Source: Hyaloraphidium curvatum SAG 235-1 (Eukaryota; Fungi; Monoblepharomycota). From it: DNA of 64,000 nucleotides. Under the pieces are notes generated by a model, which did no database searches, was not told the DNA's origin, and saw only the letters and a list, made by a program, of their open reading frames with translations. This document shows positions 25,226 through 38,940 of this stretch, one piece after another. The stretch covers positions 372,001-436,000 of the forward strand of contig JAIVFI010000016.1 of assembly GCA_025558095.1 (NCBI GenBank), read 5' to 3'. Both the position numbers and the translations under genes were made by a program. How positions within the stretch are numbered: position 1 is the first letter of the stretch; the number at the start of each line of letters is the position of its first letter.

Positions 25226-26592
<1,367 letters not shown>

Positions 26593-26640
26593 AGGGAGGG
26601 GATCTAGATACCCGCTGTGAGAAACCAATGAATGTACATT

Positions 26641-29150
26641 TCACAGTTCCATCATGATCTCCTGCTTCGCAAAGTGTCCAATCAGCTCCGCGGCGGCTGC
26701 CGGCCTCGAGTTCCACTTGGGGAACTGGCGCTTGTAGAGGTACATGCAGACCGTGTCTTGCGGCTTCACCGGGCCGTCGAACTGGCACTTCATGTGGCCG
26801 TGCGTTCCTGCCCGCCTCGTCAGCACCGCTACAAGCAAGCCATGCAGCACTACGAAACCAACCTATCGAGTCCTGGATGTGGCCGGTCCGGCCCAGTTTG
26901 GTCACGAGCTGCACCGGCCTGAACCACGCAATGTCCTGCGCGTTCCAGAACATGTAGCGCACGACCACCGAGCGCTTGTGGATCTTGAAGGGATGCCCGG
27001 TCAGGATGATGCGCTTGGCCACGATGCGGAGCGGATCGGCTTCCAGCACCGTGCCCGTCGCCACGAGCGCCGGATCGGCGCCGTCCGAGCCCGACCTAAG
27101 GAACAGCACGGGGGCAGGCCCGAACTGGATCGGCAGGTAGGCCGAAGCCATCGACGGGCGGCCAGGCTGGAGGAAGCGCTCGTACTTGTGCACGTTGTTG
27201 ACGCCGCCGCGCGTGTCCGTCGAGTAGATCGGCGAGGCCCAGAAGCGCCGGAAGCCGAGCTGCACCAGCATCTGGTCCTTGCTCTTCACGGGCTCCTCGT
27301 ACTCCGAGGTCTTCGTGACGACCATGTTGACCAGCGACGTCTTGTTCTCGTGGGGCAGGAGGGAAAAGATCCCGACCAGCCCCGACTTGCCGACCAAGTC
27401 CACCGCGTCCGCCGGAAAGTCCCTGATGTTGAGCGTGACGTAGGTGCCCGGCTCGACGCCCTCGCTGCCGACCTGCTTCAGCATGCGGTGCCGCGTGCGG
27501 GAAAAGTTCTCGAACTGGAAGATGCGCGAGTAGTCGACGGGAAGGTTCTCCGTGGGGTCCCACGGCGAGGTCCGGAAGGACTTGAGCCCGCGGTACTTTT
27601 GGAACCGCACGCGCGCGTCGACATCCCGCGGAGTGTTCACCTCGTCCGGAAACTGCGCGTCCTGCCGCTGCTCCTCCTTCTTCTTGAGGTACTCGCCGTA
27701 CGCGTCCTCGTCGTCCAGGTCCTCGTAGCTGCCATCGTCCCCGTCCGAATCGGCGGCATGACCGTCCTCGAGCTCGATCATTTCGTGTTCTTCCTCCTCG
27801 TCGTCCGATCCGCCGTCCGAAGAGCGCCCGTTTGAAGCACCGTCTCCGTCGACCATGTCATCATCCTCCGACCCGCCGTCCTCGTCGTCGGCATCGTCTT
27901 CCGAATCGTCGAGGATCCATTCGGCCTGGTAGGCCGAGGTGCCTTTGGGCACCCGCCTCTTTCGCTTCGCCGCACCGTCGTGCCCGTCGGCCATGGCTGC
28001 ATTTTGCCGCTGCTCTCCGTCGCGGAGCTCCTCCTCGGTTGGCCAAGTCTGCTCGCCGGCCATCGGGTCGACTTCGTTCTCCGAGGCGAGCGATTCCTGG
28101 GCCTCGGGATCCGGCTCCGCGAGCACCAGTGAGGGCGCCATCTCCACGTCCCCGGCCCGACGATCGTCCGGCCTCTGGGCGGCCTCGATCGATTGCAGCT
28201 GGAACGTGCCGACTCCGACAACGTGCACCAGGCGGTTAGCCGACATCGGCTGCCCCCGGACGAAGCCCGTGACGCGAAGCGTGCCGGTCGGGTCGCCGTC
28301 GGCCGATTTTACCAGCTGGAGCTGGTCCGGCACCAGGTACGAATGCCGCTCCCTCCAGAGCGGGGCCTTTGATCGGGTGTTCGCCACGGCACGGAGGCAG
28401 GCGCCGCAGTCCTGCGCCGAGTCCAGGGAGAACAACCTCTGCTCGCCCGGGAAGCGGTCCTCCATAAAGAGCTGAAGGGACCTCTTGATGTCCTGCCGCT
28501 TCCCCGAGGGAACAGAGTTCAGATGCTGCACGATCGCTAGCGGCGTCACGACGCCCTGGGCAGCAACGGCGCTGAGGCACATCTTGCCGAAATCGTCCAC
28601 CTCCACGACCGCCGACAGCACGTAGATGACGTAGTCGACCACCTTTGCGGCGTCGATGATCTCCACGAGGTCCCTCCGGCATTGGACCAGCTGCACTTTC
28701 TGCTTGAACTGCTCGAGCCTCAGGACCGGCGACGGCCCCTCGGAGAGGACCGTTGCCCCGCCGCTCTTTGCCAGGTGCTCGACCACGACTTCAGTCGACA
28801 CATCGGGGCACAGCGGGACGACCGCGACCAGCTTGGGAGGTGCCGAGGCCCCCTGGAAGAAACGGTTCTCTTGCGTCAGAAGCTCCCGCTTCTTCTTCTG
28901 CTCCAGCTTTGCCGCATTCCTCCTGTCCGCCTTGGTTGATCGGCTGCTTTTCGTTCGGCTGACGACATCGGTGCGCTCCACCTTGCCTTCAGGGCAGAAG
29001 TGCGTCAGAGAAGAGGAGGAAGTGCGAACCAGTCCCGTGCGCACCCTTGTTCTTGGCCTTTATGGAGCCTTTCGTAGCATGGCGTGATTTGAAAGACCTG
29101 TTGGTCTGCTTCAGCGTCGGCCGATGGTGGAACGGCTCGCCCGGCGGCAT
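26641..29150 (-). CDS. TSR1: 40S ribosome biogenesis protein Tsr1, multi-exon
   Basis: [51 protein letters not shown]...[51 protein letters not shown]. Confidence 0.97.
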
Positions 29151-29200
29151 TTTCGTTGTTGACTTTTGAGGTGGACGAGCGCGTCGATCACTACAAGTCG

Positions 29201-29223
29201 CACACATCGCCTCTGCTACTAGC
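29201..29223 (+). repeat. Left degenerate terminal inverted repeat candidate
   Basis: CACACAT-cgcctc-TGCTACT-a-GC versus the reverse complement of 37829-37851, CACACAT-atggaa-TGCTACT-t-GC. Confidence 0.55.
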
Positions 29224-29254
29224 TGTTGCTAGAAAATCCGCCGGCAGCGCCCCA

Positions 29255-32200
29255 ATGCCAGTGGCCTTGGCATCTCCATCTGCAAACTCTGCGCCTCGGG
29301 CTTCTTCACAACTACCTGTGCCCCGGACGCCAATGTTGGTGGACGGCCCCGCCATCGCAACTCGGCTCAAGCAGACTGGGAAGCTGAGCTCGGCGGAGAT
29401 TTCTGCGTCGTTGGGAGTACATCGCACGACCTATTTTCGTTGGATCAAGTGGGCATCGCTGCCCCCGGCATCGAGAGAGGGAGTTCGCAAGGTCCGGAGC
29501 CGCCGCAAGGTCACGGACCAGATGGTCCAGGACATCGTACACGAGGCAAAAAGCCAGGTCAGGGTCACCCAGCAGGAGCTAGTTCTTTTTCTGGCAGAAA
29601 AGTACGGGATCCGCGTCTCCCAGCAGCACGTTTCGCGGCTGCTGAAGGCAAATGGCGTCACTAGGAAGAGGCTCACCGTCAAGTCTTCCGAGGCCTTACG
29701 GCAACCGGAAAGGCATCTTCTGTTTCATAGTCGCATCGAGAATGTGCCTATGGAACGCATGGTCGCACTGGACGAAACGGCTTTCGAGCTCAACGACCCG
29801 GGCAGCCACGGGTACTCGGACCGCGGAAGCCGCGCTGTTGTCTACCTCCCGCGGAATAGAGGTCCAAAGGTGACTCTGTGTCTCGCAGTGTCACCAAGTC
29901 CTCGTCCGGGAGCAGTTGCTGGAACGGTGATCTCGTATGTGATCTACCGTGGCAATATGAACACGGAGCGATTCTGCGCTTTCTTGAGGTCTGTTAAGGC
30001 AGACGGACAGGGCCCCAAGAACGCGCTGAACATTGTGATTGACAATGCTGGTTACCATGGATCCCCTTTGAGGGCAAAGAAGACCGCAAATGGTACTGCG
30101 ATTGTAGAGAACACCTCCGGCAAATCGTTCCTCGCGGTTCAGGCGGTGGCGAAAGCCAACAACCTCAACCTCGTGTACCTGCGACCCCGTACTCCCGAGT
30201 TCAATGCGAGTGAGCACGTGATAGGGCGGTTGAAGCGCCTTGTCCGGCGAGACTGTCCCTCCACTGTGGCCGATCTGATTGACGCTGTCGAGAGGGCGAT
30301 ACGAATTGTTGGGGAGAGCGATCTCTGTCCCACTTTTCGGCACTGCATCAAGCTCAGCGCGGAAGAGAAGGCGCGCATTCAGCGGGAGATGCTTCGGTCC
30401 GACAACCTTGGTTCCACGAGCGGGTGCATACAACCGGAAACGGCAACTGGCGAGATCACGGGAGACACAAACTCGACCCGCATGGACACCGGATCGGGTC
30501 CCGGGGCCGCGCCCAGGAACGCGGTGGACGACGGCATCGCTGCTCGAGAAGCGGCCCGCCTGCTGCAGGAGGTGGGGAACTCGTCGCCGTCGTCATTGAC
30601 GCGTGCCGACCTCCGTTTGACTTCCCAGGCCCGGGAACTCGGAGTGGCCGAGGTCGACGTCCACAAGGCCTACGATGTGAACCAGCTCTATGGCCGACTA
30701 CGAGGACTCAGTAATGGAGGTGCTTTCGGATCGGCGTGGAACACGTTTCTGGACGAGCTGCAGAACGCCCGCGCCACCGCCTCCAAGGACGTCATCGGCA
30801 CCCTCACCTCCCTCCCTCCCGACCAGTTCCGCGGAATATGCTCCGCAGTCGAGAAAGGCAAAGGCAAGGAGGTCCGCGCGGCCCTCTGCCGGAAGCTGCG
30901 GAACTTCGTCGAGCGACGTCGGCTCCCCGCGCCCGTCGCCGACGAACCATCGCCGGCCACTGCGGGCACCCCTTCCGGCCTCTCGCCGCCTCCGCCGCTC
31001 TTTCCAACTGTTTTAGCGAACCCGATTTTCGCTCCAGCCGTTGTCGGAGCCCCGGGGGCGCAGCTGGACGCTCTGCTGGACTACGCTCTGGAGCCGACCG
31101 TGCCCAAGGACCTGCGTGAGGCTGTCAAGTACGCGTGCTGTGCCGGGCTTTCCGACCTGGACCAGGGTCGTCCGGACGGCAGTTACTCGTCCCTCTCCGC
31201 GACGAGGAAGGAACGACTTTTTGTCTCGCGCCTGGTGGCGGTCGACCGTGAAGGAGGCTTCCACCGCTGGACGGCAGCGACCGAGATCCGTCTGCGTGGG
31301 CGGCTGATGGCGAGTGATGCGGCTCGTTTGGATGATTTCGTCCATTCCGTATTCCTTGCTCGAGTGCGGCACTTCGTTCGCCAGCCGGAAGCCGGGCTCA
31401 TACCCGTGGAGGACTTCGAGCTCCCAGCCCAGACCCACCTCCGCCGGCCGCAGAACTGGCGCAAGATCCTGGAGGACGCCCTCGGCGCGCTCAAGAACGC
31501 GTCCGGGAAAGCCCTGTGGGATCGGAGGAGTCGTTCGCTCGAGGTTGCGCTCGCCAGCCTGACTCTGGAAGAGCGCATGGCGCTCGTTGTCCGCACGGAC
31601 TTGCCCAAGGACATTGCCTTTCAGCAGGCTGAACAGCGCCGCATCTTCTTCGAAACCTTCCTCTGGGGCCCCATGAAGGCCAACGAGGCGCTCCTGGGCA
31701 TACCGGATCGTGGTCCGGTGCCCGCGCTGGTGAGCAACGTTCTGGCTTCCAGCTCCAGCATTCTGGGCTGACGGTGCACTCCTCGCAGCCGCTGACCTTC
31801 TACGAGATCTTCCAGCCCACGAAGGGGCTAAGAGGCGTGAGCGAAAGGGCGGACGCGGACCTCGGCTCGTTCTTCGACAAGGCTTTGGCTGCTGTGCACG
31901 GAGAGGAGGGGCGCTCGGTCCTGTTTGAGTTGATCTTTTCTGGCCACCCGATGCGCGACCATTTGCTGGACTATTGGGGGTTCGATTCGCTCGTGAACCC
32001 TGTCAGCGACGCCGCCCGTCGCGCGAGCGTCGCGTTCCACCTGAAGTTGGACGCGCTCGAAAAGGCCTTTGACGCCAAGCGCGTCGACATCTGTTCCCTC
32101 GGATGCCTTTATTGTCCCTTCACAGTGGCGGTCGAGGGCCGGGTGCCGGCTCGGAACCCGGAGCGGAAGAGAAAGGACGCGAACGGCGCTACGGCCGGCA

Positions 32201-35200
32201 AGTCGTCGGATCAGCGCCAGTACGACGCTGGCGTGCGGCTCGGGCATCACGTCGCGGGGAAGCACTTTACGTGCCAGATCTGCCGCAAAGACGGCAGGCG
32301 TGTCACGTTTGCGTTCGAGGCCAAGTACCGGGAACACGTGGAAACCCAGCATGCAGATGCTCCTCTCCAGTAGGTCTCCGCAAGAGATCCACACGGGGTC
32401 ATTACTCATCCTCGCTGTCCCAGCCTCGTCATCCCCCGGGCCTTCACATCACGGCGCGGACTGCTGCTCGCCCAGGTCAACTACATTGTGCCGCACGCCT
32501 GCCGCACTCAAGCAACGGAAGCGGAGAGTGCTGCCGCCGGAGCAACGGCGATGGACGTAGACGGGGCGAAGGACGAAGGTTGCGCGGCAAAGGAGCCCAG
32601 GTGCCACCTCTGCCTGTCGACAACCCGGGGACACCGGCGAGGATGCCGGCCGGCTTTGCGGCAAGCTGCGGAGAATGCGTACAAGGCCGTCGGGGATGCG
32701 GAGCACGAGCGGCACGTGACCGAGCGCGCCATGTCGACAACCTGGTTCTTGCCCGAGGAGGCCCTCCACCCCTGGGCGATCGAGCCGCTCAAGAGCGTGG
32801 GGCTGCTGATTTCCCGCGCCGCAACCGGTGCGGCGTCCTTTGCAAAGCTCGTCTGGACCTCGGCGATGCTGGCAGTATACAACGGTCTGCTGGACAACCG
32901 CTCCGTTCCCCCTGCCATCCTGCGCAAGTTCCCACCTTCCGTCGTAGCGAACATGGCGATGCTGGTGGTTTTGAACGAGGGGGCGCTAAACGCCAACGCA
33001 GGCACACGCCGGAGGAAGAAGCCGCGCGGGGACATCGGCACGGATCCGGGCGTGGAGATCACCGCAACTGGCGCGGGACTCGGCACGGTCACGGAAATGG
33101 CGGAGGACGATGACGAGCCCGCTGCCGAAGATGGGGAAGAAGAAGAGGAGGGCGGAGATTTCGGTGAATACGCCGGGTTCGCGGACTTCCTGGCCGGCGA
33201 GGGGGAAGCCGACGGACCTGAACACGTGCTGGAAGCTCTGGGCGCCGGCTTCGGTGGCGACGGGATGGCCGACGACGGCGAGGTTTTTGACGGTCCCGGC
33301 ACCCTCTCCGTGGAGGAGCATAACGCGGCGGCTGCGGTTCTGCGGGCGGTAGTCACCGACGCCTACCACGAGCTGAGGCCGGACCTGGCTTCCGAGTTTG
33401 CCGACTGGCACCACTACCTGCTGCGCGGCCCGCTGCTCGGTTACTTCAGGAATCTTGCCGCAGGACGCCTCCGCACCGTCCCCATCCAGCTGCGCAAGGA
33501 GCTTTCGGACCTGATCCGCACCTTCCTGAAGGAGGAGCTGGACAACGCCGTGAAGCGGCAAAAGATTGGCCACATCTTGCGCTGCGTGCTGGCCAAGCTC
33601 GGGACGGGTGATACGAACTTTTTCGGCACCAGCTTCGCGGCCTTTGGCTGCAGCCCCGAGTTTGACGCGGAGGCTCGGCTTCGCCTGACCTGGCTACTCC
33701 TGCCGCTATCCGGACGCTCGCTGAATACGATCATGGACCTGCGGGAGCCCCGCGACCGGCCAAAATGGCCAGCGACTGTCCTACAGCGCGTGATGCTTTC
33801 GCTGAGGAAGCGGGACGTGGAGCTGAAGCGGTCGGCGATGGCGACGCGTATCCGCAGCGTCGCCATATCGCCGCAGAAGGCGCGCGGCAAGTCGCAGGAC
33901 GAGGAGGACGCAAAGGCGGCGTACCTGCTGGATCTGCGCGACCGGGCCCAAGCCGAGCTCCGCCGGATGCCGCCTGAAGCGATCAGGCAACTGCAGGAGG
34001 AGGAGCGGCACGAACTGGTCGAGACGTATGTGGCTGACAAGCTGCAGTTGCGTGGCATCCCCGTCGAGATCCCCTCCGTGCAGGGGGTTGGCATCCACCC
34101 CACAAAGAGCCGCTTTTGGGGGCCGGAGTGGACGGAGGGCCTGGACAAGGAGGCGCTGTTGCAGCGCTACGAGAGGGAGCTGCTCGATGAGAGGCAGAGG
34201 GCGCGTCAGCTGAGCACAGCTGAACTTCGCCTCGCGCAGACGGGCAAATGCGCGGACGCGGACGCGTTTGGCTCCGAGGCTCTCTTTCAGACTATGCGGC
34301 TGCGGGAGGAGCAGATCGCGAGGCTCAAGATGCGGCGATCGTCAAGCGTTGCCTCGACCGGATCTGAACCAAGCCCGACGGCCTTGCCGCAAAGCTCGAC
34401 ACCGACACCTTCATCATCGAGTGCGGCGGACAGCGCTCGGCGCGTCGCCGCCAGCTTCACCACCGAGGCCGCAATGGACGTTGACCCTGCGAACGAGGCG
34501 GAGGGTGGTGGACCCTCTGCGACTCTGTTCCGCGGAAGTGCCGCCGTGGACCTGCTTTGCGCGGACATGGAATGCTCCGACTCGGAAGACGGCAATGTTG
34601 AGGCTGCTGACGACTTCCCCACGATCGGCGGCGGGAAGCAGAAGTCGAAAAAGGGCCGACCGATCCGAGTGGACCCCAAGCCGTGGCCGAAGAACGGGGC
34701 ACCCAAGCGATTCCATGGCTACGTCACGACGGGGAAGAAGCGGGCGCCGCTGTCGCCCGAGGGCAAGGTGAAGAAGCGATTGGGGAAGTCACGTGTGGCG
34801 GCTCGCCGATGGTCCAGCGCGGCCGGAGGGAGCGGGGAGAAGAGCGTGGGTGACGCGTTCTCTCCCGTGGTGAGGTCGTCATTCTGATACGTTTCATGAA
34901 CAACAGCAGTCAAGGACCCAAGGCGGCACCACCGGAGGGACCTGGGCCGCGGGCGGGATCCGGCCGCTCTTGACCAGGATTTCCCTCACCCCCATAGCCC
35001 TGTACATAACCGCGAGCGATCTGCCCGACCTCTTCAAGATGCTCGGTGTTAAGCTCGGCCCCTTGGCACCGGACGTGGCCAAGATCAACCCCGATTACCT
35101 GTTTGGACACCTGTTCAACAATGGCAACAAAATTGTTCAGGACGAGCGTCTTTTCCGCCTCCATCAGGAGGGGAAGCGCTCCCCGGCAGGGCACGCGGAC

Positions 35201-37601
35201 GCCTCACGGCCGACCCTTCGCCGGTCGGGCGATGCGCTGCACTGCTCGTGCATTGCTGGCATGGTTCTTCGTGGCCCAACCTTTGCCATTGTCGAGGAGC
35301 ACATGGCCGTCGTGCCCAGGGCTTCGAAGCCGAAGGCACCGCAGCAGCAGTGGACGGAATCTGAGCCCAAAGTGACGCCGCCCTTGGATTGTAGGTCCCC
35401 GTTCTTTCATCGGAGCTTCCGCGCCTAACCTGCTTCCCAACAGTCTTCCTCAGCGCGCCATCGCCCGAGCCGTGTTGGGAGTGTACGGAGCCAGAACAGC
35501 ACGCCCACTGGCACGACTTTTCGGCCCAAGATTCGTTCGGGATGCCCGCGGTCCTCGTGCCCACCCTTCCGCACGGTGCTCCGGACCCCCCGCCGGGCAT
35601 GGCCGTCGTTGATGGTATGTCATCCTTGCCGCTGCACTCAGCGCTGCTGATGTGTTCATCTTCAAGCTCACGGCTGGCTCCATGCTGGCGGGACCGTCTT
35701 CTTCCCCCCGCCCGCCATTACCGACGATGCCGAGCACTTGCTGGTAGATCCCGACTCGACTCCTTTCACGTGGATGGACGTGGATCAGGATTGGATCGGG
35801 CTCCCGCCTCCCGCCTCCATCCCCCCCGAACCCCCACCCGCAACATCACCGAACTCCTCCACATCGGTACCTTCCGAGTCTCCATCCTCCTTCACTCCCA
35901 CCCTCGCTCCTCCGCCTCCTCTTCCCATCCCGACGGCCTCGCCTGTGGGTGCCGCAGGATCTTCTCCGCTTCCGCCCTCTTCTCCACCTGCCCCTGCTCA
36001 GCCTCCAACCTCCGCTCCTCTCCCACCGCACCCTCGCTCTACGTGCTCATCGATACCTCGTCCGCCTGTTGACTGGAAGACCTCTATACCGTGCTACAAC
36101 TTTAGCCGGAAGGCGGACGCGGAGAAGCTAATGCCGCACTTCCTAACAATGGCAACGGAAGAGGAGATGTGGGATGCCGCCCAACGGGGCCTTCCCGTTT
36201 CTGGTGGCGTTGTCTTTTGCGATCCAAATCGCTGGTTCTATATGCAGGGCGGTCGACGACTTGCACCCGCGTTTGTGGCCCGCTGCCTGGACCCCGGCCC
36301 GGGGAGACGGTTCGACTTCGCAAACACCCACCTACCCGAGCTTTCGGAGAAGATCGTCGTCACCAACCCGGACGGCACCACATCGACATACATTCTTGTG
36401 CGCGCCAACGTGCCCAAGGGGTGCATCTCTGCGGGCCGCATCAAGGACATCCGGCTCGAACACTCCTGCGACGAGACGGCCCGCGTTGCGCGGGCGACGC
36501 AGGCGGCGCCGCGCAACATCCGCTGCCGACACCACCCGGACGGCGCCGCCAAGCTCTCGGCTCACCGCCCGACCAACCGCGGGCATGCGAACCGCGACGA
36601 GAAGCTGCGGAAGGCCGAACGGAACTGGACGCTTTTCCCCAACCCCGACGGCGGGTCCGATGCCGACGGGGACAGGTTCTGGGGTGGTATCGCCGGCTTT
36701 GGGCGCGCCGGCGTCCGCCAGCTTCCGGAGCTCATTCTCGGCGTGCCTGGGGACCTCGATCGCCGGATGTGTGGTTACCAGCACGCTTCTAGGAAACTGG
36801 CGTCGCTGCGCAAGTCGCACACCCTCCCCTCCGGCCTGACAATCGAGGCTTGGGAATCGGCACTGCCTTCGCAGCGGACGACGAGCTGCGAGCAGTTTCG
36901 CAAGTACGCCCATGCCATCACGAAGGAGCTCTGCTCCGTCGTCAAGTTCTACTGCAATGATGAGATATGGTTTGTTCACGGCCAGCCTGCGTGATTGGGA
37001 TGCAGCCTTCCTGACGCCTTCTTTTGCAGCCGCGACCGCGTCCGTACCATCCGGAGGCGTCGGCAGGTGCTCGACTGGATCGCCCGCGACCTGTGTCGCA
37101 ACCCGTACTCGGGCAAGTTCGATTCCCAGACCACCTTCGCCTATGGCGCCGCCCGCTTTGGTCACGCAAGCAAGGGCGGTCCGGCTTCTCGGATTGTGCA
37201 GTTCAGGGCCGCGCTCGCGGCCGTTGGAATCCTCGTTTTGATCAACGAGTACCTGACGAGCCAGATGTGTTCAAAGTGAGTTTTCCCTCGTACTTCGCGC
37301 CTGATTTCGCGGCATTGATCGCCCTCTCGGCAGGTGCCTGACGACCTACGTTGTCCCCATCACCAACCCCGGGTGCCGTGGCGAGATCCGGGGCGCCAAG
37401 TACTGCCCGACCTGTCGCACGTACTGGATGAGGGACGTCAACAGCTGTCGGTCCATCGGGTACCTGTTCTGGTTCGCGATCGCTACCGGTGGCGAGCGCC
37501 CCTGGCCGTTCAAGCCTGACACCAGGAGGCGCAAGCCGTCGAAGCCGGCCGCGAAGTCCGCTGGTACGCTGATTTTGCTCGCTTTGGAGCGTGTGAGCTG
37601 A
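29255..37601 (+). CDS. Giant transposase-Fanzor fusion protein (~2,650 aa; ~2,710 aa ending at 37836 if a further intron 37564-37612 is spliced)
   Basis: Predicted exons 29255-31729, 31789-32369, 32424-34845, 34907-35390, 35444-35614, 35667-36969, 37030-37275, 37334-37601 sum to 7950 nt (2650 codons) with no internal stop. Every intron is GT-AG and 52-61 nt, with a CTRAY-like branch site. Confidence 0.75.
29333..30360 (+). CDS. IS630/Tc1-mariner-like transposase module (HTH + HTH + DDE) at the N-terminus of the fusion ORF
   Basis: HTH SSAEISASLGVHRTTYFRW; second HTH TQQELV..L.EKYGIRVSQQHVSRLLK..GVTRK; catalytic VALDET (D 29771), VIDNAGYH (D 30041), YLRPRTPEFNASE (E 30212). Confidence 0.92.
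36200..37601 (+). CDS. Fanzor1-type RuvC / zinc-finger nuclease module (intron-split) at the C-terminus of the fusion ORF
   Basis: RuvC-I candidates VVFCDPN (D 36221) or CLDPG (D 36290); ESALPSQRTTS..QFRKY...VVKFY; FAYGAARFG..SKGGP; INEYLTSQMCSKC (E 37247); CPTC..YWMRDVNSC.SI (D 37434); GERPWPF. Confidence 0.88.
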
Positions 37602-37749
37602 TGGCGTTGCAGGCACCACTCTTCAGACCGGATCCGTTCCCACCGTGCCCAAGCGTCCTGGTGCGGTGGCGCGGGGACGCGGCTCTGCCAAGAAGGTCAG
37701 GCTGGACGGCCCCGGCCGTGGGTCTTCTTATCTTTCTTCTCTACAAATT

Positions 37750-37870
37750 GGCGGGTGGTGCGAGCCCTCGCCTGTGCCCGATTGTGGGCTTGATCGAGGT
37801 GGAGTCCGAGAGGACCGCCTTTTTGGTGGCAAGTAGCATTCCATATGTGTGTAGCCAGACAGATACAGAA
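37750..37870 (+). ncRNA. Candidate Fanzor omegaRNA (scaffold ~37750-37851, putative guide ~37852-37870)
   Basis: Three consecutive hairpins just 3' of the RuvC coding region: 37750-37772 (GCGA tetraloop), 37776-37789 and 37797-37820 (GAGA tetraloop), leading up to the right inverted repeat. Confidence 0.55.
37829..37851 (-). repeat. Right degenerate terminal inverted repeat candidate, followed by TA
   Basis: Plus strand GCAAGTAGCATTCCATATGTGTG|TA; two 7-mers match the left repeat with identical 6-nt spacing. Confidence 0.55.
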
Positions 37871-37889: not shown

Positions 37890-38940
37890 ATGAAGCGGAA
37901 GCGGGAGGAATGGACCGCCAAGGAAAGCGATGCCCTCTACGATGCGGTCGCTCGCTTTTCGAAGGCCCGGATCGCGGACATTGCCCGCCATGTGGGCTCC
38001 AAGTCCCCCCTGGACGTCCTCGCGCGGATACACTTCCTGGACCGCGCGCTCGCCGAGGCCGAGGCCCTCGGCCTCGTCGGCCCCGAGTCGGACGGCAAGC
38101 ATGCCAAGTACGATGCGGTCGAGAGCCCTGCGGCGCGGATAGAGGCCGAGGAGCGCGAGTCGGAGGAGTCGGCCCAGCGCGAGGACAGGGAGCTCCGCGA
38201 GGCCCCGCAGACCTTTATCACCAAGGAGATGCGGGCTCAATGGAAGAAGCCCATGGAAATCTTCAACCTGCACATGCTTGCTGTTCTGGCGGAAAGGTGG
38301 GCCTTGTCGTTCGGCGGTTCTGTCAATGTCTCACCGCCTCGGACCAGGGTGTACGTGCGGCACAGCGATACGGCCATCCAGCGCGATGCGTTACTGGAGC
38401 TCTACGACGCGCTGGCACGGTGGCTTCGGCAGACTCTCGCGCAGGTCGTTTTCTTTGCGCAAGCGCGGAAGCCGCGCCGCCAACGTGTCCAGGTGAAAGG
38501 ACCGTTCTGGCCACCGAGCCAAAGCTGACGCGTGTCCTTGGGGGCAGGTCTCGGAGGACGACGTCCGTGACGCCTTGGAGGCGATGCCTTTTCCGAATCG
38601 CAACAGCGAGTACTACATCTCCCACTTGCTTTGGACCGGGAAGGGACGCCGGGCATTCAATGCCCACTACGGGGTCAACCTGGACAGTCTCGGAGGATCG
38701 GAGCAGTTGGGGGTTGCCACAGGGGGGGCAGATAGTATTGAGGAACAAAACCTCAACTCGACCATGGCCCCTTGGCACGAAACGAACCTTGGCCGCGTTG
38801 GCTGCTCGCCGGAACCCGGGGGGGACGAACTGAGTGCAGCAATCGTCGTGGAGGACGACACGAGCTCGGACAGCTCGATGAACTCCGGGCCTCCGGACGG
38901 TTTGGGCGATACAGGAAGCAATGCTTCAGATGCCGATTAA
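37890..38940 (+). CDS. Myb/SANT-domain protein, possibly Rrn5-like (RNA Pol I upstream activation factor), multi-exon
   Basis: WTAKESDALYDAVARFSKARIADIARHVGSKSPLDVLARIHFL Myb-like repeat followed by a PAA-acidic segment. The Rrn5 assignment is by resemblance only. Confidence 0.55.

Follow-up and report, generated by a model that had tools for sequence, protein, structure and literature searches.

A young transposon of Hyaloraphidium curvatum in which a Tc1/IS630-type transposase and a Fanzor nuclease share one reading frame

Background

Known Fanzor1 proteins stand alone and are about 600–700 aa long. In SpuFz1 and GtFz1, as in the protein described below, RuvC-I has the form D-x-N, glycine occupies the RuvC-II position, a glutamate is placed six residues before the C4 zinc finger and RuvC-III contains RD; introns and an ORF whose end adjoins the right end of the element are also shared, as is, by prediction, a helical insertion in RuvC. 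The glutamate six residues ahead of the finger is the Fanzor signature (PMC13565253) and is essential in Fanzor (PMC10530073). The conserved G and E of Fanzor1 are about 36 aa apart (G500/E536; PMC3627910), and the metals of SpuFz1 are bound by D383, N385, E541 and D606 (PMC10432273). Fanzor1 TAMs usually have 4–5 nt, and the homing model has been reviewed together with the occurrence of the TSD in the scaffold (PMC13565253). Most characterised Fanzors have no cognate transposase alongside, and none was found for Spu-1 (PMC10432273).

A DDE transposase accompanies Fanzor in the Mariner/Tc1-Fanzor1 elements (PGv-1, PUl-1, and HMa-1; Bao and Jurka 2013, PMC3627910) and TnpB in IS630-TnpB (DDE-6; PMC10691335), with inverted ends and TA at the junctions, as in the present element. 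In both groups the two enzymes are encoded by separate ORFs and TA TSDs are formed.

CAST/Tn7-type and dead-TnpB systems are prokaryotic or engineered and multi-protein, with a nuclease-dead effector and a demonstrated guide. In type V-K CAST (Cas12k) and Tn7 TnsD targeting, as in the element described here, a DDE transposase inserts in one orientation, and the site of insertion is a set distance away from a sequence that is recognised; engineered dead-TnpB-guided transposition is reported to have the same geometry (bioRxiv 10.1101/2025.08.27.672191).

In this study, a 64,000-nt stretch of H. curvatum SAG 235-1 (contig JAIVFI010000016.1, positions 372,001 to 436,000; hereafter the window) was analysed. 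It contains an element that differs from Mariner/Tc1-Fanzor1 and IS630-TnpB in four respects: there is a single ORF, the TIRs are short and imperfect, the terminal bases are inherited, and a distal motif is targeted. Its Fanzor differs from Fanzor1 in being the end of a ~2,700-aa fusion and in its longer RuvC insertion with a possible extra Zn site; whereas the TAM of SpuFz1 adjoins the left end (CA-TA), the conserved motif here is 20–24 nt away. Compared with CAST, the system consists of one eukaryotic protein whose triad is intact, and no sign of guide pairing was seen. No natural transposase–Fanzor fusion or distal-motif targeting was found in the openly accessible Fanzor/TnpB papers searched, a 2026 review included.

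Results and discussion

Nine exons form one frame

The element and its gene were delimited as follows.

29196..37857, + strand: whole element, 8.66 kb, the stretch common to all copies (5 copies, 99.8–99.9% identity)
29196..29222, + strand: left end, imperfect TIR (CACACAT-6 nt-TGCTACT); the window copy is without the T of TA
29255..31729, + strand: exon 1, HTH and DDE_3 Tc1/IS630 transposase, then ~450 aa without assigned function
31730..31788, + strand: intron 1, containing the transposase-frame stop (31769–31771); spliced in run X3
31789..32369, + strand: exon 2, with a C2H2-type zinc finger at 32272–32352 that has a weak match in relative L043
32424..34845, + strand: exon 3, 807 aa; colinear with sister family B, 36% identical
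34907..35390, + strand: exon 4, putative WED-like region, so called by position
35444..36090, + strand: proline-rich linker, comprising exon 5, intron 35615–35666 and the start of exon 6
36221..36229, + strand: D-P-N of RuvC-I, with the catalytic Asp at 36221
36461..36532, + strand: H-x-C ... C-x-H cluster in the RuvC insertion
36779..36967, + strand: predicted helical RuvC insertion
36970..37029, + strand: intron 6, from X3 splicing
37030..37275, + strand: exon 7, with Gly 37145 at the canonical RuvC-II position, alternative Glu 37247 and first finger Cys 37268
37276..37333, + strand: intron 7, interrupting the first CxxC; 58 nt, GT..AG, phase 2, position identical in family B
37334..37563, + strand: exon 8, with Cys 37335, C-P-T-C from 37404 and RuvC-III Asp 37434
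37613..37836, + strand: exon 9 to the stop TAG (37834–37836), after intron 37564–37612

Contigs of run X3 showed eight GT..AG joints over 31680–37679, corresponding to introns 31730–31788, 32370–32423, 34846–34906, 35391–35443, 35615–35666, 36970–37029, 37276–37333, and 37564–37612. Run X3 is presumed to be RNA; all eight introns are missing from it, with a depth of 0 at intronic sites (e.g. 32393), and DNA run X1 contains the introns that X3 lacks. Exon-by-exon phase bookkeeping gave a single stop-free frame of 2711 codons from ATG 29255 to 37836, or of 2685 codons from the alternative ATG 29333, which is the start conserved in family B. Since intron 1, which holds the transposase stop, is spliced, the frame continues past it. 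The nine exons therefore make one frame of ~2,700 aa that joins a Tc1/IS630 DDE transposase to a Fanzor, with putative zinc fingers and helical domains between the two, and fills the 8.66-kb element. The product could be a polyprotein processed after synthesis.

Retention of intron 1 would yield a transposase-only product ending at 31769–31771, as expected if the fusion were an artefact of gene prediction and transposase and Fanzor were separate genes. This explanation is scarcely credible and is largely refuted by the splicing in X3: introns 1–8 are all spliced, 2711 codons are without a stop, the frames of family B are open and colinear, and one X3 (presumed RNA) contig links the transposase exon to exon 3 across the first two introns. 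The X3 contigs cover the gene joint by joint, none of them spanning its full length.

The first-pass annotation had described a RuvC split by intron 37276–37333, followed by a last exon. The intron is spliced in the X3 contigs, and splicing completes the first CxxC as C-S-K-C. RuvC is indeed split there, but it is also split by 36970–37029, and the gene begins ~7 kb upstream at the transposase; the exon past 37276–37333 is real, but is the eighth of nine, with the stop at 37834–37836.

The transposase matched PF13358 (DDE_3) at E 3.6e-12. Its catalytic residues D173, D263, and E320 (codons at 29771, 30041, and 30212; DD56E) are conserved in family B. An insertion of ~22 aa within the DD56E spacing (window 30041–30214) is strongly conserved in family B. 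Exon 3 gave no library match, and an ESM Atlas search with it was blank too; the REC/WED N-lobe of the Fanzor probably lies within this exon. The 'DG' strand of the relatives is degenerate in exon 4.

Copies and relatives

Sister family B has ten copies, colinear and with open frames, 64% identical to the window family (family A) in the transposase, 36% in exon 3 and 83% in exon 7; this comparison excludes the middle of family B, and two elements on C2 likewise lie outside the sequence read. The TIRs of the window element are ~25 bp long and imperfect, and only 59–137 nt separate its left end from the ATG. The element is a young, autonomous, recently active and transcribed DNA transposon. One copy of family A, on C4 (L004 / G000:C4), has a 1-bp deletion in exon 4 at the equivalent of window 35303, which shifts the frame before RuvC, and is also without the first ATG.

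Two more transposase–Fanzor pairs, ~8 kb apart, were seen on the minus strand of the same genome (G000 C2:397656-406427 and C2:426757-435546); they probably represent families C and D with this kind of fusion. A separate, more distant Fanzor-like family of the same genome lies in long open frames of 666–1230 aa at C14:724841, C31:259840, C7:693824, C2:359648, C2:417654, C34:485782, and C1:1445052. Related Tc1/IS630 transposases (~41–46% identity) occur at C5:421656, C23:314195, C13:321449, C15:359128, and C27:349727 with no Fanzor match nearby, and are possible partners or ancestors.

In L043 and L048, two relatives from metagenomes, the N-terminal coding region is likewise very long and includes a zinc finger; both contigs end short of any transposase position. 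In the giant relative L043 an OTU/papain-like motif pair (DGDCF ... HY) was recognised by eye in the middle region (L043:3400–4000), with no Pfam match. The intronless relative L041 (82–1380) carries two in-frame stops in the RuvC region and is either a decayed copy or uses another genetic code. Part of the words of the element was contained in metagenome runs X4, X5, X6, and X7 (X5 and X7 from freshwater), X4 having scattered pieces 97–100% identical to it; as these runs contain its pieces, wild strains carry the element. No homologue was found in viral contigs.

The RuvC catalytic residues are those of Fanzor1

The catalytic motifs listed from the letters were all located as claimed: Asp of VVFCDPN (36221) and of CLDPG (36290), Gly of FAYGAARF (37145), Glu of INEYLTSQMC (37247), and Asp of WMRDVN (37434). 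Two candidates had been left for the RuvC-I Asp. Exon 6 was aligned with its family-B counterpart from this genome and with four relatives from metagenomes; D-P-N at 36221 was invariant in 6/6 aligned homologues, and D36290 was unconserved, family B and P0005 having N there and P0006 lacking the residue. On this conservation RuvC-I is D36221, not D36290. G37145, E37247, the four Cys and R-D-x-N at 37434 were invariant in 5/5. In protein numbering the residues are D2230, E2552, C2559, and D2595; RuvC-I D, an alternative E six residues before the C4 finger and RuvC-III RD are thus all present, and D-P-N corresponds to D383/N385 of SpuFz1. The Fanzor1 pair G2518/E2552 is 34 apart and invariant. 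The rearranged triad claimed by the first-pass annotation is therefore intact and fits the published Fanzor signature (PMC13565253, PMC10530073).

Database and fold searches took the exons of the spliced model one at a time. Single-exon searches in PDB, Pfam, and Foldseek were blank, and the split window exons alone gave no PF07282 match. Homologue searches with exons 1 and 6 in a 5.8-billion set were also blank; as they were length-limited, they are silent on full-length fusions. Homologues of the window Fanzor, in turn, matched PF07282 / Cas12f1-like_TNB at E 3e-11, which together with the CxxC completed through the spliced intron identifies the C4 zinc finger. That the motifs are unchanged across homologues of 25–83% identity, and that these match Cas12f1-like_TNB in Pfam, argues against chance. 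A RuvC-II/III profile weakly matched TnpB-like proteins, Cas12g, SpuFz1 (E 0.049), and GtFz1 (E 0.071), the Fanzors ranking below the TnpB and Cas12g matches. The nearest outside matches are eukaryote-type AYGAAxF/DEYxT proteins. The helical insertion superposed on residues 457–516 of G. theta Fanzor1 (rmsd 1.7 Å over 57 aa, weak Z of 4.3), the lowest rmsd in the list, for predicted models of pLDDT 50–58. In the H-x-C ... C-x-H cluster H124, C126, and C145 are invariant, and the cluster may form an extra zinc site.

Purifying selection acts on both enzymes. Between families A and B, dN/dS was 0.14/1.67 (0.08) for exon 7, 0.25/0.98 (0.25) for exon 8, and 0.56/1.56 (0.36) for that portion of exon 6 which includes RuvC-I; the transposase gave 0.29/1.74 (0.17). 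D, E, and D are kept in all ten family-B copies, and one copy has a premature stop (C35, TAG in the RuvC exon). From the invariance of the residues and the low ratios in exons 7 (0.08) and 8 (0.25), the Fanzor nuclease is likely to be active.

The distance from D36221 to T-S is ~324 residues, outside the D-X(125,275)-[TS]-[TS] spacing of Bao and Jurka, which is the range of a 2013 survey and not a mechanistic criterion (PMC3627910); the longer RuvC insertion responsible is common to the relatives. Could the Fanzor instead be a non-cutting RNA/DNA-binding module, its acidic residues retained for structure or RNA binding? The long stretch from RuvC-I to the finger, beyond the published 125–275 (PMC3627910), and the degenerate 'DG' strand of the WED would agree with this, and a nuclease that cuts could be self-damaging when joined to a transposase. 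We consider it improbable, since D, the N two residues on, E, and D are all invariant at 25–83% identity, and loss of these residues is typical of inactivated TnpBs such as Cas12k (PMC10691335). The nuclease has the catalytic features of Fanzor1, yet lies outside the published D-to-finger spacing and has no adjacent TAM: T/A alone stands at the junction, no 4–5 nt TAM adjoins the left end and positions -12..-3 are unconserved. By itself the triad is ordinary Fanzor1 biology; the unusual part is its context.

Terminal bases are inherited with the element

At the right side, CA was found in 5/5 family-A copies and TA in 10/10 family-B copies, and TC stood at the left of 6/10 family-B copies. These six form one clade by three internal SNPs. 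A distant relative ends TAGC-CA, as family A does. A Tc1-type TA duplication cannot transmit the base adjoining the end of the element. Because the adjoining bases are inherited with the element, the TA is not a regenerated duplication; among the copies compared, CA at the right of A (5/5) and TC at the left of B (6/10) are at odds with a TA that is duplicated afresh at every target site. The data fit a blunt insertion into T^A; alternatively, both bases of TA may be carried with the element.

In many copies small indels are clustered 13–50 nt inside the left end (window 29209–29250 and the family-B left ends L029, L030, L026, L038, L039, L040, and L031). In family B, deletions were present in 3/4 TA-ended copies, as against a single 1-bp insertion in the 6 TC-ended copies. 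The indels are possibly nuclease scars.

Insertion occurs at a fixed distance downstream of a motif

The left flank of the window copy contains the following feature.

29181..29189, + strand: family-A target motif GCGTCGATC in host DNA, ending 7 nt before GTCG of the window copy

The consensus GCGYCGATC was present in the left flank of 5/5 family-A copies in fixed orientation, against a background rate of 4.5e-5 per base. In 3/5 copies it ends 22 nt before GTCG (20 nt + TA); in two sister copies without the T it ends 19 and 7 nt before GTCG, the window copy being the latter. Family B has a different motif, AAGGGRYT, at -34..-27; 24 nt separate its end from the junction TA, and position -27 is T in 10/10 copies. 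The information content of this motif was 5.58, compared with a null maximum of 4.03 in 20,000 draws; by the same null the family-B right flank had no significant conservation. Weaker conservation reaches -20 in family B (p 5.5e-4), and none was detected at -19..-3. The A and B motifs share a register relative to the insertion point. Each family thus inserts in a single orientation, with its own motif a fixed distance upstream, a geometry like that of CAST. No repeated flank was found among the copy flanks compared.

The window copy is located between two diverging host genes, 26549–29150 (-), which from its sequence we take to be a TSR1-like ribosome-biogenesis gene, and 37890–38940 (+), which has a Myb domain (PF00249, E 4e-4). 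One X3 (presumed RNA) contig reaches ~2.7 kb past the left end of an element. None of the insertion sites scores as coding on both sides, and reconstruction of empty sites from coding frames was thereby unusable. Sites of this kind, the position of the window copy between divergent genes and an element with only 59–137 nt before its ATG are what might be seen if insertion were directed by a DNA-binding host factor whose motifs lie in promoters or between genes, in the manner of Ty3/Tf1 tethering, with the Fanzor uninvolved. Selection alone, on the other hand, predicts non-coding sites, the A motif occurs within host ORFs too, and the sister families use different motifs in one register; host tethering is distinctly improbable.

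The common register of A and B and the fixed orientation with the motif 5′ of the site would also be expected if the Fanzor half itself aimed insertion in a CAST-like manner, the motif being its TAM and the protein binding, perhaps cutting, 20–25 nt downstream, where the element would be joined with or without guide pairing. The T^A of family A is 21 nt past the motif, and SpuFz1 cuts the target strand after nt 20–21 (PMC10432273); the two sister copies without T sit nearer the motif and resemble repair scars. Family B, by contrast, is unconserved at -19..-3, a motif of 9–15 bp is long for a TAM, and the guide searches described below were negative. Aiming by the Fanzor half is on balance unlikely.

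Candidate omegaRNA and searches for guide pairing

37786..37857, + strand: candidate omegaRNA scaffold and right end, ending TAGC-CA, with nucleotide conservation with family B

A 40-nt block (37786–37828) is conserved with family B at the nucleotide level, and its predicted stem is identical in both; the folding z is weak (-1 to -1.9). The block is a candidate for the omegaRNA scaffold. The scaffold of GtFz1 overlaps the last codons of its ORF (PMC10432273), as the candidate does in family A. A search for ghost omegaRNA loci gave 9 extra 12-mer matches, about the chance expectation (~7 by our own estimate).

When spacers were compared with all surviving right flanks, matching was no better than with random DNA (7.6 vs 7.3 ± 0.26; 6.8 vs 6.8). 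An empty donor site, consisting of motif, gap and spacer seed after TA, was not found with exact seeds. A target complementary to the guide RNA, as in CAST, was therefore not found among the surviving flanks and exact seeds. Both results count against aiming by the Fanzor half. Its strongest form, in which the Fanzor–omegaRNA half picks the site by TAM and some guide pairing for the fused DDE transposase, making the protein a single-protein eukaryotic integrase and a programmable equivalent of CAST, is doubtful indeed. As the spacer–flank and donor-site searches were negative, the motif is, as far as tested, read by protein and not by guide. The element is Tc1/IS630-like by enzyme but shows no regenerated TSD, and CAST-like in geometry but negative in the guide test.

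Proposed mechanism

The reading we prefer, with about an even chance of being correct, is that a protein-read motif aims the transposase and that an active Fanzor performs ordinary restorative homing. A putative domain of the fusion, in the middle region or an enlarged REC/WED lobe, would read the motif without a guide and set the transposase onto T^A 21–25 nt downstream, where integration would probably be blunt and without true duplication. The Fanzor would take up an omegaRNA cut from the 3′ end of the transcript, with the right flank as guide; after excision it would cut the empty donor site, and the element would be copied back. The motif-reading domain could double as the reader of a distal TAM serving both enzymes, and because one motif reader could do so, retention of the fusion would be explained. 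The left TA, which has no conserved adjoining bases, counts against this model.

Conclusions

A Tc1-type transposase able to insert 8.6 kb at a constant distance from a 9–15 bp motif would be a new tool for site-selective integration even if it is not programmed by RNA, and two natural specificities, those of families A and B, are available for comparison. As both enzymes are on one polypeptide with a readable target rule, a single construct can test homing and target selection directly. Being young, transcribed and autonomous, and having such a target rule, the fusion bears on the role of Fanzor in eukaryotic transposons.
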